A stretch of 63,765 nt of DNA, filler included, from Parasitella parasitica NRRL 2501 (GCA_025201805.1; 12 parts of 12 records of this genome joined end to end with filler, not necessarily neighbours in it), one strand, 5' to 3'; positions 29,330 to 42,852 are shown, numbered from the whole stretch's first letter. Notes: generated from the sequence alone by a model not told the origin. Numbers and translations are program-made.

Positions 29330-31686
29330 ATGGAGAATAATAATCCTGACCACAAAATAATCCGTGCAGAGCAAGGCGCATTGAGGCCTACAATTGAGAA
29401 TGGCTCTGATGATCCAATGAGGATTTTTGATAATGAAAAGATGGAAGCTTATGATGACACCGACCTTTCATTTGAGAGTATACCTGCTGAAAATTTCAAA
29501 CATACTTCAACATCTACTCAACCTCATCGTGGCTTAAATGCTCGCCATATTCAAATGATTTCGCTAGGTGGTTGTATTGGGTATGACATATTGAAATTTA
29601 TAGTCTGATGCCTTCACTCACTTCGAATCTTGTATAGTACTGGTTTGTTTTTGAATTCTGGACAAAATATTTCAGAGGTAAAAGCTAATAGCTGTTTATT
29701 TTGCTACTTGCTTGTTGCTTATTTGTTTGTTTCTAGGCTGGACCTGCAGGCGCTTTGATCGCTTACTGTGTTGGTACGTTAGTCAAGAAATAACCAGTTA
29801 CATTATTTTCTCACAATCCACTTTTAATCTTAACATTTTCTTATCAAGTTGGATTGATGGTAATACATTTATGCAATACAGATATCGTGAGAAAATTGGA
29901 TTAGTTCTCATCGTTGCAACTTAGGTTTACTGTCTTATGACCTGCCTTGGTGAAATGGCTACATACATGCCTGGTAAAGCCAATGTCTAGTTGTATACCA
30001 TGGTGATCATACTGAAAATACATGTATAGTGTCTGGTTCTTTTAATCACTACGCTACGCGTTTTGTTGATCCTGCTTTTGGTTTTGCTCTTGGTTGGAAT
30101 TATTGGTAACTACGCTATATGAAGTCGTGAAATCGAAAACTAAATACGTTTTAGGCTTTCTGTAAGGGAAAAACTTGATTTTGAGACTTTTTATACTAAT
30201 ATGCTAGAATTGGTTTATCATTTGCTTTTTAATGATCAATAGTGGGTACGTTAATTTTGATACTCTGTATAAGACTATATATATTGACTAATCATGCTTA
30301 TTTTACAGGCTGTAACAATTGCTGCGGGTAAATTTTTCTAGACATGTGTAAAGGACATCTTGTAACTCTTCCGAATAGAAATTTCTGCTGCTGCTACTAT
30401 TATCAATTGGTGGAAACCTGTCATGCCTGATCCAGCATGGTCTACCATCTTTATTTTTCTTGTTTTGTTTATCAATTTGGTTGGTGTCAGACTCTATGGT
30501 GAACTTGAATATTGGTTCGCACTCTTGAAGATCTTGATTGTGCTTGTATTCATCATTATTGGTAATATCGACTACAATTCGGTATTTAGTAAAGCAAACT
30601 CAATCAGTAATTATTAGCTCTGTGTGTTACAACTGGTGGACTTGGTGCCGGTCCTATTGGCTTCAAGTATTGGAAAGATCCTGGAGCCTTTGCCGGTGGT
30701 GGTCTTGGTACACTCAATGTGTTGCTTTCTGCAGGCTTCTCTTTTATGGGTACTGAAATTGTTGGCATCACTGCTGCTGAAGCAAAGAACCCAACAAAGA
30801 CTGTTCCTCGTGCTATTAAAAACACTTTCTGGCGCATCATATTTTTTTATATTGTTACCATTTTCTTGTTAGGCATGTGTCTCCCTTATGACAACCCTGA
30901 TCTGGCCAATGCTGATGGCGATCCAGGAACCGCTTCTTTTACTCTTGTTTTTCAACTTGCTTACATTGACGTTGGTGCTCATATTATCAACGCGGTAATC
31001 TTAATCAGCGTTTTATCTGCTGCCAACTCCTCTCTTTATACCTGTTCTCGCACCTTGCTGGGTCTTTCAAAGGATGGTAATGCTCCTCGTTGGATGGCCA
31101 AGTTGAACCGTTGGGGTGCCCCTTACTTGGCTGTCATTTGTTCGTCTGTTATTGGGTTTGCCTGTGTCTTTGCTTCCATTTACAGCGCTTCTGTTGCATT
31201 TGTTTGGTTCTTGAGCATCACTGCTGTCAGTGGCTTCATCAGTTGGTGGGGTATTGCTGTTGTTCATATTCGTTTCAGACGTGCATTCAAAGCACAAGGT
31301 CGCAGCATGGATGATTTGCCATACAAGGCTTTGGCTTACCCGTATTCAGCTATCATTGCTATCATTTTAACAACATTTATTATTTTTGGACAAGGTTAGA
31401 TCATATATATATATATATATATTATACAACATTTATTAACATGAACGTAGGTTATACAGCTTTCTATCCTCAATGGGATGGCGTCAAATTCGTCACAAAT
31501 TATATTGGCCTTGTTCCTGTTTTCGTTTGGTATGTTGGCTATAAGGCCATTAGAAAATCTAAGGTTGTTCCCTTGATGGAAGTTGATTTTGAAACTGGTC
31601 GTGTTACCCATCTTGACATGGAGAAAGATAGAAAGGAAGATGAGATTTTACCTTGGTATCGCAAGGCGCTTGCTTGGGTTGTATAA
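29330..31686 (+). CDS. Amino acid permease (APC superfamily, YAT/Gap1-Can1-like), many exons including micro-exons
   Basis: RGLNARHIQMISLGGCIGTGLF, AGPAG, LGEMAT, RFVDPAFGFALGWNY, YGELEYWF, FSFMGTE..AAEAKNP..PRAIK..FWRI, SAANSSLY..SR. Confidence 0.93.
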
Positions 31687-31832
31687 GGAATTGCCGTGTG
31701 CTATAGCTCTTTTTTTTTTAATTAATTAATTAATTAATTGTATTATCATTTTTCATCATTAGCTACTATTGTATCTTTTTGAGCCATTTTTTTATTTTAT
31801 TTTTATTATTGCAAGGGCTAATTTTTTGGGAT

Positions 31833-32805
31833 TTACACTGTATCATCACTACAATAGGATAGAAAATGTTAAAAAGATACTGTGCTTGCTTAAAAATTGC
31901 TGCTATATATTTGAAGTATAACTTACTACAAGAAGAAACTATTAGCATAACTCAACAAACGAACAAATGTTGCTAAGATTTACCTGAAATGCCCAGGCTG
32001 TCTTTTTAGGCGATGCTGATGCGTTTTTGACATACAGGTCATTATCCGGCGGAAACTCCTAATTACTCGTCCTTAGCTATATAAACACCATTGATATGTT
32101 ACCAACATACCTTCTTTGTACAACTTGAAATCATGGATATAATAGACAAACAAACATGAGCAACTGTTTGAACAGGCGACCAATCTTTGTAGAGAATATT
32201 CAGGCAAATGTGTCCGTTTGAATATACCTATCAATCATTTTCAGTCAATTGTTCAAGATGAGGGCCCATATCTTTCCTTTACACTAGAGATGGATATAGA
32301 TTAATCAAAATATCATAATCTGAATGTAACAAATTGATAACTTACTGCGGATGAATTGGTATGAAAGGTCGTATAAAAACAACGTCAGGAGCTTCTAAAG
32401 GGTATTGTTCAGTGAATCGAAACTGGGATGTACAATTGTCAATGAATGATGTTTCAAAAATGCTGTCTAGTTTACCTCTAATTTGAATTCTTCTCCCTAA
32501 TCATTGGAGATTAATAACAAAAAGAAAAAGAAAATTTGTTCCCTCTAACCTGGTATATTGTCTTTGCTGCTCCAATTATTTTAATCTTCCATCTAACAAA
32601 TTTATCAGCAAATACAAATTCATCATTCATACCGCTATTATAGTTACGATTTGAAACTTTCGGCTTCCTCTACTATAACGCCTTCGGGAGGGTTCTTATG
32701 GAGGCCTACGGTTCATCAACATTGGCCATGTGTTTCTATGCAGTTTTTAAAAATCAATTTACCGCTTAATTCCTTTGTCAGTCTTTTTGTAAAGAGAGAA
32801 GTCAT
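31833..32805 (-). CDS. UBE2W: Ubiquitin-conjugating enzyme E2, UBE2W-like, multi-exon (absent from the ORF track)
   Basis: Spliced model MTSLFTKRLTKEL..NPPEG..WKIKIIGAAKTIYQGEEFKLEFRFTEQYPLEAPDV..IPIHPHVYSNGHICLNILYKDWSPV..VCLSIISMISSC..PPDNDLYV..PKKTAWAFHDDTV. HPH (not HPN) and terminal HDD are UBE2W-type. The model needs a 1-nt exon and a stwintron. Confidence 0.9.
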
Positions 32806-33025
32806 GTTTCTACACTATAAAATGTCGCGTATTATTCAAGTGAAAGCTGTGTATTATGAGGAAACTAATCGAAAAAGCGGCATATTTGTATCAGAAACTT
32901 GCCATGCTCACAGTCACACATGTTTTGCTTTATTCAGAAGCTTCTCTTCCTTTTCTATATAAATATGTACAGTTTTGTGAAGGTGTGTATGATCCTTTCT
33001 TCTTTCCTCCTATCTATCTTGACTT

Positions 33026-35296
33026 TCACTTTGTTTTTCTCCAAACCGTATCGCATACTTGGATCACTTCCCACATTGGTCGGACATCATGCACTCTCAT
33101 GATATTAGCCCCGCCTGCAACACAAGCTGCAACAGCCCCAGCAGTGCCAAATGTTCTCTTCGCAGCCTCATCTACGCCGGTTATGCTACCAATAAACTTT
33201 TTGCGGCTAATGCCTACCAGAGATGGAAGTCCTCGCAATAACGAATCTTGCCCCTGAGACATGTCTTTCATATGACGCAAGAGTTCAAGATCCTGATCTG
33301 CCGTTTTAGCGAATCCTACACCCGGATCAACAATAATGTTCCAACGGTGAACACCAGCAGCAATAGCTCTCTGTACTAGCACGTGCAATACATGAGACAC
33401 ATCACCTACGACATCGTCGTTTTCGTATTTGGTATTTTCCTTGGACATCATGGTCTGAGCATCTCCGCGCATGTGCATTAAACAAACAGGGACATTACAT
33501 TCTGCCATGATTCTCAGCATGTTGGGATCACGAGTACCACCACTAATGTCATTGATCAAATTGGCACCAGCCTTGACAGCAGCCTCAGCTACAGATGCGC
33601 GGAACGTATCAACAGAAATGGGTAAATCAAAGCCTTCTTCTCTCAATTTAGAAATTACAGGAACCACACGGTGAATTTCTTCTTCTTCTGGGAAACTGTC
33701 GTCGGCACCGGGACGAGTAGACATACCTCCAATATCAATGATATCTGCCCCTTCTTCCTTCATGCGCCAAGCAGCCGCAACAGCAGCCTTGACTTTGTTA
33801 TGCTTGCCACCATCTGAGAAACTGTCCGGTGTAGTATTCAAAATACCCATGACATAAGTCTTGTCGTTCCAACGCCAAATTTTACCCTGTTGAATGGGCG
33901 CCACCTTATCAATTTTGAGAGGACCTTCTTCGCTTTCAGCAGTAACCTTGAGTAGTTGGGACAAAAGTTGGCCATTGGTTTTGAAAAGACGAGGATGTTC
34001 CATGTCTCTAGCGATATCACAAAGAGGCCATAATACAAACTCCCGCTCCTGGATGGATTTGTGGGGGATGATCAAGGCCTCGCCGTCATTGAGTACGAGA
34101 TCATTATAGAATAAGATATCAAGATCGATTGGGCGTGGGCCGTTGCGGAAACTGGGGAGGCGTCCTAATGCGTTCTCGGTCTCTTTCAATTTGGCTAGTA
34201 ATTGATGAGGCTCCAAGCATGTAGCAATCTTGCATACACTGTTCAAAAAGGCCGGCTGCTCTGCATAATACATTGGAGGTGTCTCGTACAGAAAGCTAGT
34301 ATCGAGCACAACACTACTGCATTCAGATTCGAGCATATTAAGAGCCTGATTGATGTTGTCAACACGGTCGCCAATATTTGACCCAAGAGCAATGTAGGCA
34401 GTCTGGGTATAATCAGCAGCCACCTCTTTGCTAAAGTTTAGGTTACCAGCATGATGGATAAATTTTTCCCCTGCCTTTTCCTCAGCATCAAGCACTTGCT
34501 TTAACCATATTCTATCCCGGGTAACCTCGATACCAGAACAATCAGCAAACAAAATAGCGCTCGGCTTCTCTACTCGGACAGAAATCTTGTTGATATGACA
34601 CTTTTCTAATGCTAACCGAGCAACCGTAACACCAAATGCTTCGATCGTCTTGTAGCCAGATGCTTCAATATGACGAGTCAATGTACGAACAATGGTACGC
34701 AAGTTGTGAGACTTGTTTTGTTCTGAATCAGCAAACTTGCCATAGGGTAAAAAGGAAGGGTATACAATCAAATTGATAACAACCACTTGCTTCTCCTCCC
34801 TCTCCCAAGGGTTGACACCAACGATCGTATGAAGACGCAAGTCTCTCACAAAAATCTCGTCGGCTACTCCCAATCCTGATACTTGACCTGTAGTTTCTAT
34901 TACCTCTTTATCGCAGCCGTCATAATCTTCGATGGCTCGAGTTAACCTTACACCTGAAGCAGCAGCATGCAAAAGAGCCTTAGGTTGTTCCACAGTTACC
35001 ATTGTTTTAGCAGCACCGAACTGAACACAACACAATTTAACGACAGCGTGAGCTAGACCCTCCAAAGAATTGAATGTACAGGTTTCGCCCAATTTGGTGA
35101 TAGCCTTAGTGACATGACCGTAATGAATAGTGTTTGTAACATGATCAGTATTACCAGCAGCAGTGATGTCAGTGTAGATCTCGACAGAAATCACGACGGG
35201 CTGTGATTTAAGTCTTTGCCATGCCTCTACGCCTGCTACATTCTTCAGAGCCAGGTTCTTTACAAGAATTTTGTCGTATTGCTTTTCCTCTTCCAT
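33026..35296 (-). CDS. FOL1: Trifunctional folate synthesis protein (2x dihydroneopterin aldolase, HPPK, dihydropteroate synthase)
   Basis: Intronless 756-aa ORF. Two FolB-like units (VEQPKA, VEKPSA); HPPK AYIALGSNIGDR..GPRPIDLDIL; DHPS MGILNTTPDSFSDGG, STRPG, DPGVGF, SRK, RVHDV. Confidence 0.97.
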   Translation of the reverse strand: MEEEKQYDKILVKNLALKNVAGVEAWQRLKSQPVVISVEIYTDITAAGNTDHVTNTIHYGHVTKAITKLGETCTFNSLEGLAHAVVKLCCVQFGAAKTMVTVEQPKALLHAAASGVRLTRAIEDYDGCDKEVIETTGQVSGLGVADEIFVRDLRLHTIVGVNPWEREEKQVVVINLIVYPSFLPYGKFADSEQNKSHNLRTIVRTLTRHIEASGYKTIEAFGVTVARLALEKCHINKISVRVEKPSAILFADCSGIEVTRDRIWLKQVLDAEEKAGEKFIHHAGNLNFSKEVAADYTQTAYIALGSNIGDRVDNINQALNMLESECSSVVLDTSFLYETPPMYYAEQPAFLNSVCKIATCLEPHQLLAKLKETENALGRLPSFRNGPRPIDLDILFYNDLVLNDGEALIIPHKSIQEREFVLWPLCDIARDMEHPRLFKTNGQLLSQLLKVTAESEEGPLKIDKVAPIQQGKIWRWNDKTYVMGILNTTPDSFSDGGKHNKVKAAVAAAWRMKEEGADIIDIGGMSTRPGADDSFPEEEEIHRVVPVISKLREEGFDLPISVDTFRASVAEAAVKAGANLINDISGGTRDPNMLRIMAECNVPVCLMHMRGDAQTMMSKENTKYENDDVVGDVSHVLHVLVQRAIAAGVHRWNIIVDPGVGFAKTADQDLELLRHMKDMSQGQDSLLRGLPSLVGISRKKFIGSITGVDEAAKRTFGTAGAVAACVAGGANIMRVHDVRPMWEVIQVCDTVWRKTK

Positions 35297-40796: not shown

Positions 40797-40969
40797 TGTC
40801 GAGTGCAGAGATGTGTTAGTTTTGTGATGTTTTGGTAAGTGTATATAAAGTATAAAGTACGAGATGAAAGATATGTCTTGAGCAGAGATGGGATTATTAT
40901 ACAGTAAGATATAATTATAAGATATTTTATGAGATAAAAAGATAACGTTTATTGTTTTGTACTTTGACA
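40797..40969 (-). mobile_element. LTR-like family E copy
   Basis: TGTC...GACA termini; similar to 43867-43965 and, inverted, to 44779-44869, which is followed by a PBS-like site and gag. Confidence 0.65.
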
Positions 40970-41099
40970 GATATTTATATATTGATTAAAAAGTTACACA
41001 CAAGGTCAGTGAGAATCTGACAATAACTAAAAGTGTTACACACAAAGTCTGTGTGTACCTGACAACATAAACGTCTCACGTTAAAAATGATTAAAAATT

Positions 41100-41172: not shown

Positions 41173-42248
41173 CTGAGTGTTAATAATGCGAGTGCAAAAG
41201 GCTTCTGTACAATTACCTTTTTTTTGAGATTTGAATTGAAAATTACCATATTCCTGAACGGACTTTGCAAAAAGTGAATCAATGTTTTCGATGTTATATA
41301 TCACACCAAAACCGTTCTCAAGCCCATATTGCTTAGATAGAACAGGGGCTTTTTTTCGTCTAAATAATTTATATCATACTTTATCTATTTGAATTATATT
41401 GCTGAGAGATTCTACACAACAAATCAATAATTCATGTTGTGCCAGTGTCAAAGGGCGCAGCGTAATGTTATGTAAATAAGATTTGTATAAAGTAATAAAG
41501 ACTTTCTGAATAAAACCAGATACAAAACTGAAGACTTTTATTGACATAAGATATNNNNNNNNNNNNNNNNNNNNNNNNNNNNNNNNNNNNNNNNNNNNNN
41601 NNNNNNNNNNNNNNNNNNNNNNNNNNNNNNNNNNNNNNNNNNNNNNNNNNNNNNNNNNNNNNNNNNNNNNNNNNNNNNNNNNNNNNNNNNNNNNNNNNNN
41701 NNNNNNNNNNNNNNNNNNNNNNNNNNNNNNNNNNNNNNNNNNNNNNNNNNNNNNNNNNNNNNNNNNNNNNNNNNNNNNNNNNNNNNNNNNNNNNNNNNNN
41801 NNNNNNNNNNNNNNNNNNNNNNNNNNNNNNNNNNNNNNNNNNNNNNNNNNNNNNNNNNNNNNNNNNNNNNNNNNNNNNNNNNNNNNNNNNNNNNNNNNNN
41901 NNNNNNNNNNNNNNNNNNNNNNNNNNNNNNNNNNNNNNNNNNNNNNNNNNNNNNNNNNNNNNNNNNNNNNNNNNNNNNNNNNNNNNNNNNNNNNNNNNNN
42001 NNNNNNNNNNNNNNNNNNNNNNNNNNNNNNNNNNNNNNNNNNNNNNNNNNNNNNNNNNNNNNNNNNNNNNNNNNNNNNNNNNNNNNNNNNNNNNNNNNNN
42101 NNNNNNNNNNNNNNNNNNNNNNNNNNNNNNNNNNNNNNNNNNNNNNNNNNNNNNNNNNNNNNNNNNNNNNNNNNNNNNNNNNNNNNNNNNNNNNNNNNNN
42201 NNNNNNNNNNNNNNNNNNNNNNNNNNNNNNNNNNNNNNNNNNNNNNNN

Positions 42249-42852
42249 TTTTTCGTTCTTTGCGAGTAGCAGCTGCTTTTAGATTAACTGTTTTTGGAGC
42301 TAATCGACGTTTACCAATAGCTTGAGCACCATCTCGTCTACCCCAGTATAATTCAATATGTTTAGTAGAATCGAAACTTTCAACAGGCTCCCAAGTATGT
42401 TCAATCGGATCATCGTATCCTTTCCAATGCACCTTGTATAAATAGTTACCGGGAGTACCTTTATGATCAAGAACAGCTTGAATTTCATAATGTTCATTAC
42501 AAAAGACATCAGCCGTCGTAGGTTTAGGATTCACAGCAGCATTATAAACAATTTGGTGAGTGGGGACATCTCGACTGAGTAAAGCGCCTGTCTTATCCAT
42601 TAAAGTATAAGCACCATTATCAGTTACATTGTGGATTAAATAGGGTCCCTCATACCGTTCATCTAATTTGTTTTGACGATGCACATTTTTGATCATCACT
42701 TTACTTCCAATAGGATATGGAGTTGTAACAATCTTATGCTTCTTTGCAAATTCACCATGATCAGCTTTCTGAGTTTCCACTATACGTTTGGAAATAGCAG
42801 GGATGAGGACATCTTGAACAAATTGGTAACGTTCATTGATAATCTTTTCATC
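42249..42852 (-). mobile_element. Ty3/gypsy chromovirus integrase C-terminus (GPY/F motif + chromodomain), gap-bounded
   Basis: YPIGSKVMIK..KLDERYEGPYLI..GAYTL; YEIQAVLDHK..YKVHWKGYD..TWEP. Confidence 0.9.

Follow-up and report, generated by a model that had tools for sequence, protein, structure and literature searches.

Introduction

Spliceosomal twin introns (stwintrons), in which one intron interrupts a splice signal of another, are described from ascomycete fungi. In the [D1,2] type, the first nucleotide of the outer donor is separated from the remainder of that donor by an inner intron, and the type is defined by the sequence 5'-G1/U2RWGY (here and below, a slash marks a splice junction) together with a +1 frameshift if the unit is excised in one step (PMC9024468). 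A case in Lipomyces was stated to be the first stwintron outside the Pezizomycotina, and in the same work Mucoromycotina homologues of the Lipomyces host gene were searched and contained no stwintron (PMC7138796); at the bioDA position, too, Mucoromycotina have standard introns only (PMC5639578). Within the literature that we searched, stwintron cases were ascomycete only and no paper paired Mucorales with twin or nested introns, which agrees with the remark in an earlier, sequence-only reading of the present locus that no Mucoromycota stwintron is known. As nuclear single-nucleotide exons, the literature searched yielded only those of Arabidopsis (PMC4674806) and of Fusarium CYP621A, and the paper on the latter describes its case as the first fungal example and the second of all (PMC12940212).

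Here we examine a window of 63,765 nt, filler included, from Parasitella parasitica NRRL 2501, in which a UBE2W-type ubiquitin-conjugating enzyme (E2) gene carries both a single-nucleotide exon and a 136-nt intervening sequence that we interpret as a [D1,2] stwintron. The features of the gene, and the orthologous loci with which it was compared, are collected in Table 1.

Table 1. Features of the UBE2W-type gene in the window, orthologous loci in relatives, and public models of orthologues that end inside the stwintron
Feature	Position	Strand	Support
UBE2W-type ubiquitin-conjugating enzyme gene	31833..32805	minus	start to stop codon, frame check and spliced contig
Exons 1-4	32805-32763, 32705-32648, 32592-32550, 32496-32476	minus	frame check and contig joins
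Exon 5, 77 nt, ends ...IHP + CA	32346..32422	minus	frame check and contig
Intron upstream of 1-nt exon, 62 nt, GTAAGT..TCTCTAG	32284..32345	minus	frame check, contig, orthologues
1-nt exon (T), third base of CAT His, second His of HPH	32283	minus	contig and 7/7 orthologues
Intron downstream of 1-nt exon, 55 nt, GTAAAG..TGATAG	32228..32282	minus	frame check, contig, orthologues
Exon 6, 39 aa, carries catalytic-cysteine stretch VYSNGHICLNILYKDWSP	32111..32227	minus	PDB and Pfam matches
Exon 7, 74 nt, EFPPDNDLYVKNASASPKKTAWAF + CA of His codon	31985..32058	minus	frame check and contig
Complex intervening sequence, 136 nt, GG...AG overall, read as [D1,2] stwintron	31849..31984	minus	sequence and contig skip
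G, first nt of outer donor, split from donor remainder by inner intron	31984	minus	absent from mRNA; CAG/GT in 7/7 orthologues
Inner canonical U2-type intron, 58 nt, donor GTAAAT, acceptor TTGTAG	31926..31983	minus	sequence, orthologues
Inner branch-point-like GCTAAT, branch A 31942, 16 nt before inner acceptor	31941..31946	minus	motif scan
Outer-intron remainder, 77 nt, TAAGT..., giving GTAAGT after joining G31984; acceptor TTGTAG	31849..31925	minus	sequence, orthologues
Outer branch-point-like TTTAAC, branch A 31869, 20 nt before acceptor	31868..31873	minus	motif scan
Last exon, T GAT GAT ACA GTG TAA; completes His, then D-D-T-V-stop	31833..31848	minus	frame and contig
E2 orthologue, Mucor-like JGI contig	L001		
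E2 orthologue, Mucor flavus	L002		
E2 orthologue, Gilbertella persicaria	L003 and L004		
E2 orthologue, Phycomyces nitens	L006		
E2 orthologue, Mycotypha africana	L008		
E2 orthologue, Cunninghamella echinulata	L011 and L012		
Stwintron-truncated public model, M. flavus, 137 aa	L002 8144-9073		
Stwintron-truncated public model, Gilbertella, 143 aa	L003 6411-7181		
Stwintron-truncated public model, Phycomyces nitens, 145 aa	L006 8000-8933		
Stwintron-truncated public model, Mycotypha, 141 aa	L008 7474-8416		

Results

The gene is a UBE2W-type E2 of nine exons

Exon borders were set by eye on the minus strand, and the reading frame was then verified with a local script. The frame check gave nine exons, one of them of 1 nt, and a 149-aa product ending AWAFHDDTV (terminal stretch ...SPKKTAWAFHDDTV-stop), while the ordinary introns of the gene were all GT..AG and 52-62 nt long. 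To identify the product, exons 5, 6 and 7 were searched singly. Exon 6 matched Pfam UQ_con at 1.7e-10, with human UBE2W (2MT6, 8A58, 2A7L) and Agrocybe UbcA1 (3WE5) as its top solved-structure matches, and exon 7 aligned to human UBE2W (residues 125-145 of a chain of 151) and also to Agrocybe UbcA1. Beyond the aligned Y/F (position 146 of 151) the human chain has five residues, as many as H-D-D-T-V. The C-terminus of human UBE2W reads ...HDDTC. Ahead of VYSNGHIC, the Mucorales protein reads H-P-H, with HPH in place of HPN, and this replacement is described as unique to the Ube2w family (PMC4630614). By its HPH motif, the structure matches of exons 6 and 7, the UQ_con match and the conserved C-terminal region, the predicted protein qualifies as a Ube2w-family E2. 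The sequence-only reading had recognized a UBE2W-type terminus, and the best structure matches of exons 6 and 7, together with the HPH motif, bear this out.

The public gene call for the source genome (GCA_025201805.1, MU619456.1) runs exactly from 32805 to 31833 and has 149 residues; since span and length are the same as ours, a correct version of the protein has probably been deposited with this genome. Elsewhere in the window, a long ORF on the minus strand at 41374-42780 is broken by a run of N and contains a chromodomain-like stretch (..YLYKVHWKGYDDPIEHTWEPVESF..), which suggests a retrotransposon integrase tail beside an assembly gap.

An assembled transcript contains all eight junctions

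Transcript data were taken from one public run of the same organism (X1), in the form of assembled contigs, and compared with the window over 31600-33100. A contig of 2290 nt, with a depth of ~300 and 0 mismatches, was without every intron of the UBE2W-type gene and contained all eight junctions of the gene model at the exact predicted borders. The run is recorded as RNA with a question mark, and we take the contig to be RNA-derived because of the eight precise splice joints. In this contig, 31985 was joined straight to 31848, with exactly 136 nt skipped and no positional ambiguity (the field 'both' was 0), and the skipped stretch ends CT..CC on the plus strand, which is GG..AG on the gene strand. 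Exon 7 and the last exon thus meet as TTTCA/TGATGAT in the mature mRNA, the same junction that the sequence-only reading had proposed looking for in mRNA. Depth was 0 in the interior bins 31855-31956, and the intermediate junction TTTCAG/TAAGTT, which that reading had also named, was not among the contigs; assembly into contigs drops rare forms, so that this interior gap speaks neither for nor against removal in two steps, and the transcript support for the gene as a whole is one contig of one run.

The same contig continues unbroken from the 3' end of the E2 gene (31600-31848) into the last exon of a convergent amino-acid permease gene, whose ORF ends at 31686 on the plus strand, and extends ~1.6 kb beyond it. 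This continuity reflects either overlapping 3' ends of convergent transcripts or a merger by the assembler.

The 136-nt intervening sequence contains nested splice signals

The last five nucleotides of exon 7, read on the minus strand, are TTTCA, with the final A at 31985 directly 5' of G31984. The 58-nt inner intron follows this G, and the outer intron, composed of G31984 plus 31925-31849, amounts to 78 nt; both halves are intron-sized when compared with the 52-62 nt of the remaining introns of the gene. These nested coordinates had been proposed in the earlier reading, and each was reproduced to the base by our reading of the minus strand and by script. The script also confirmed its claim that splicing of the first intron only, or of a single long intron, ends the protein F-Q-stop: this terminus resulted from one-step GT..AG removal of 31983-31849 and likewise from removal of the 58-nt unit alone, and the HDDTV terminus was in frame only with all 136 nt gone, G31984 included. 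The succession of G31984, inner intron and TAAGT fits the published [D1,2] definition exactly (PMC9024468), and the 136-nt sequence has the features, in sequence and in mRNA, by which a [D1,2] stwintron is recognized.

The 22-kb piece that carries the gene contained no copies of the UBE2W stwintron, and no internal symmetry or stable hairpin was found within the stwintron (z = +1.8); on these grounds an origin like that of the Hypoxylaceae 'sister stwintrons' was set aside. Another [D1,2]-like string in the window, GGTAAGT..CAG/TAAGA..CAG at 40834-40970 on the plus strand, is AT-rich and has no coding context, and was taken as chance.

The nested arrangement is conserved among Mucorales

Syntenic loci were fetched via homologues of the upstream neighbour FOL1 (single exon, 33026-35296, minus strand), and an E2 gene was present downstream of FOL1 in six relatives. 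Together with the source gene, those of the six relatives are referred to as the seven orthologues. All seven have the arrangement TT(T/C)CA/G/GTxxxx...YAG/T(A/G)Axx...YAG/(T/C)GA(T/C)GA(T/C), and all seven encode H-D-D-(T/S)-(V/I)-stop only upon removal of the whole stretch, including the first G. Conservation in other Mucorales orthologs was a check named in the sequence-only reading, and the nested layout proved to be kept in the six relatives, which represent several genera. The reconstituted outer donors in the seven species are GTAAGT, GTGAGT, GTAAGT, GTAAGA, GTAAGC, GTAAGG and GTAATA, the last of these being the weak donor of Cunninghamella. The halves are 49-79 nt long across the orthologues and longer in Cunninghamella (116 and 127 nt). 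A strict NYTRAY branch-like element lies 13-43 nt from the acceptor in the inner introns of all seven and in the outer introns of five; no strict NYTRAY match was obtained in the outer half from either M. flavus or Phycomyces, and ACTAAG is visible in that of Phycomyces. In each of the seven species the final acceptor is followed by T or C, and an alternative [A2,3] route was rejected for this reason.

Outside the splice signals, the similarity of the intron interiors is at the level of shuffled sequence. Depending on the species, 0.5-5% of dinucleotide-preserving shuffles contained an internal AG/TRAG flanked by at least 40 nt on either side; the strict form is present in six of the seven orthologues and the relaxed form AG/TRA[AGT] in all of them, and the product of the chance values over the six species with AG/TRAG is ~4e-11. 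Because this junction persists while the interiors are randomised, the internal splice signals must be under selection, and removal in one step as a GG-AG intron would have no need of them. In the frame defined by the stwintron, the last exon differs among the orthologues mainly by synonymous changes (T/C, GAT/GAC, ACA/ACC, GTG/GTC), and the amino-acid identity of exon 6 is 92-97% among five orthologues and 87% in Phycomyces. As judged by such comparisons, the exons of the gene are evidently under purifying selection.

The ordinary introns differ among species. In Gilbertella, exons 4 and 5 are continuous (L003 6709-6804); in Cunninghamella, exons 6 and 7 are, and exon 5 is split by an extra intron (L011 14051-14239, 13660-13810). 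The ordinary introns of the gene have thus turned over while both complex ones, the stwintron and the pair flanking the 1-nt exon, persisted. Of the six orthologues, four have public models that end inside the stwintron, with 137-145 aa instead of ~149, and these truncated models are without the conserved HDDxV terminus; the public model of Cunninghamella, 150 aa, reaches the true stop.

The FOL1 loci of Rhizopus microsporus (L005), Absidia repens (L007), Umbelopsis sp. (L009) and Zychaea mexicana (L010) were without the E2 gene, and a degenerate 44-nt exon-6 pattern gave no match in metagenome contigs. The gene order FOL1 - UBE2W - amino-acid permease extends from Mucor to Phycomyces and is broken in R. 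microsporus, A. repens, Z. mexicana and Umbelopsis; in Cunninghamella, another gene is inserted and a different gene follows.

Removal of the 136-nt sequence in two steps and in other ways

We read the 136 nt as a spliceosomal twin intron whose outer donor is disrupted ([D1,2] type) and which is removed in two steps, and put the probability of this reading at about 0.85. In the primary transcript, the inner 5' splice site would be the sole one at the exon 7 boundary. In the first step, the inner intron, 31983-31926, would be spliced to its own nearby acceptor, bringing G31984 to TAAGT and so forming a GTAAGT donor; in the second, the 78-nt outer intron, GTAAGT...TAG, would be excised, joining TTTCA to TGATGAT and placing the last five codons, H-D-D-T-V-stop, in frame to give the family-typical UBE2W C-terminus. 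That the reactions follow this order, and that the spliceosome uses the inner sites, we infer from splice-site logic. The primary transcript also holds an intact GTAAGT..TAG unit, 31926-31849; if this were removed first, the inner acceptor would be destroyed and the observed junction could no longer be reached. Since canonical GT-AG excisions in any other pairing fail to produce the observed mRNA, the two-step route is the sole canonical one. The contig, which contains the end product alone, formally displays a GG..AG excision, and the 136 nt might be removed in one step as a GG-AG intron in which the internal AG/TAAGT is irrelevant. We consider this quite unlikely, because it leaves unexplained why an internal YAG/TRA(G), intron-sized halves and branch-like elements are kept in seven species, because every other intron of the gene is GT-AG, and because the U2 spliceosome is not known to accept a G at donor +2. 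The idea that the nested reading over-interprets an assembly error or a pseudogene frameshift draws on the a priori oddity of a gene that requires a special splice, and on nothing more, and its probability is close to nil: seven independent assemblies all contain the G, within CAG/GT, which excludes a sequencing error at 31984, expression of the gene is seen as a fully spliced transcript at a depth of ~300, the exons are under purifying selection, and the public model also has 149 aa. On the simplest view, the twin intron would be an old, constitutively spliced complex intron for which a regulatory role is unneeded, and it would have been kept because any alteration of the internal signals would cost the gene its reading frame.

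A further proposal of the sequence-only reading was that obligatory sequential splicing could act as a switch on the substrate-binding C-terminus. Full as against partial or one-step removal would then regulate the production of UBE2W with or without HDDTV, and tune substrate recognition. In the source gene, one-step excision, or retention after the first step, does end the protein F-Q-stop, and the C-terminal region is conserved in the Ube2w family, in which a large C-terminal deletion alters or abolishes activity; in Agrocybe UbcA1, deletion past residue 127 abolishes conjugating activity (PMC4630614). The importance of this region in the family, however, explains the maintenance of a frame-restoring splice as well as a switch does. 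Moreover, the fully spliced form alone was present in the transcript contig, most of the [D1,2] stwintrons in the literature are constitutive (PMC9024468), and the tails produced by one-step removal differ among the orthologues, being Q-stop in four species, QR-stop in Phycomyces, QRR-stop in Cunninghamella and QRRYSVIRK-stop in Gilbertella, which argues that there is no conserved alternative isoform. With one-step products that are not conserved, the switch is unsupported, and we regard it as very unlikely. A related and similarly improbable idea is that the stwintron serves as a kinetic checkpoint, at which modulated completion of both steps sets the level of HDDTV-bearing UBE2W; if this were true, the rate of splicing or the masking of the inner sites, for example, would modulate that completion and hence the capacity for N-terminal ubiquitination.

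A single-nucleotide exon precedes the catalytic-cysteine exon

The interval between exons 5 and 6 reads ...CCGCA/GTAAGT..TCTCTAG/T/GTAAAG..TGATAG/GTATAT..., and the transcript contig has a single letter between 32346 and 32227 (A on the plus strand, T in the mRNA). When 32345-32228 was treated as one intron in the script, a premature stop arose ahead of the catalytic Cys. The same arrangement is present in all seven orthologues, in which the exon is T or C and the codon CAT or CAC, both encoding His; the AG/Y/GTRNR junction is expected by chance at 0.1-4% per species. Position 32283 is a single-nucleotide exon, consisting of one retained, frame-needed nucleotide between two canonical introns. 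These introns must be removed sequentially because acceptor and donor overlap in the sequence bound by the spliceosome, and either order of removal is possible.

Discussion

The UBE2W stwintron is probably the first outside the Ascomycota, inherited from the common ancestor of most Mucorales and sharing its gene with an equally old 1-nt exon. If so, nested-intron splicing is no peculiarity of ascomycetes, having been kept in Mucoraceae, Choanephoraceae, Mycotyphaceae, Phycomycetaceae and Cunninghamellaceae, and a nested intron can remain stable at one position for a very long time. With its two unusual intervals, this one small gene would offer two tests of how an intron-defining spliceosome deals with overlapping splice signals. 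The truncated public models have a practical side, in that gene predictors systematically cut off the functionally important C-terminus of the UBE2W-type protein.

The encoded protein shares with the Ube2w family, as represented by human UBE2W (PDB 2MT6, 8A58) and Agrocybe UbcA1 (3WE5, PMC4630614), the HPH motif, the NGHICL context of the Cys and the C-terminal PPDN...PKKT.W. It differs from the family in its last residue, which is V or I, and the Mucorales protein is known here from sequence.

Pezizomycotina [D1,2] stwintrons, such as that of lipS in Aspergillus and the 'uniquely occurring' ones of Hypoxylaceae (PMC5639578, PMC9024468, PMC12403724), have the identical layout 5'-G/GU...AG/URAGY...AG, and the UBE2W stwintron has in common with them canonical U2 halves, a +1 frameshift on removal in one step and a position conserved across a wide taxon. 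The 'uniquely occurring' class, whose position is conserved, is the one that it resembles in particular. The host, in contrast, belongs to the Mucoromycota and not to the Ascomycota, the [A2,3] route that is open to some [D1,2] stwintrons is impossible in the UBE2W case, and the UBE2W case is known from sequence and mature mRNA, whereas the experimental criterion used by the authors of the class is a detected intermediate.

The Lipomyces [D4,5], [D6,7] and [D7,8] stwintrons (PMC7138796) are likewise donor-disrupted nested introns outside the Pezizomycotina, with other insertion points in the donor. They are restricted to the genus and lie in a poorly conserved region, whereas the UBE2W stwintron occurs across the order and safeguards a C-terminus that is conserved. 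Recursive splicing at ratchet points in the long introns of Drosophila and human (PMC5126111, PMC6110457) also involves stepwise removal and a regenerated 5' splice site; there, however, the donor is regenerated with the end of the upstream exon and the introns are very long, in contrast to the units of ~60-80 nt and the intronic first G of the UBE2W stwintron.

By the count given for Fusarium (PMC12940212), the 1-nt exon of the UBE2W-type gene would be the third nuclear case reported and the second in fungi. Like those of Arabidopsis (PMC4674806) and Fusarium CYP621A (PMC12940212), it is needed for the frame, supplies a codon base in a conserved motif and is confirmed by transcript, and the earlier two share with it that 1-nt exons are missed by gene predictors. 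In contrast to both, the Mucorales exon belongs to an E2 family in another phylum, is found in at least six Mucorales genera, varies synonymously between T and C, and lies in the same gene as a stwintron.
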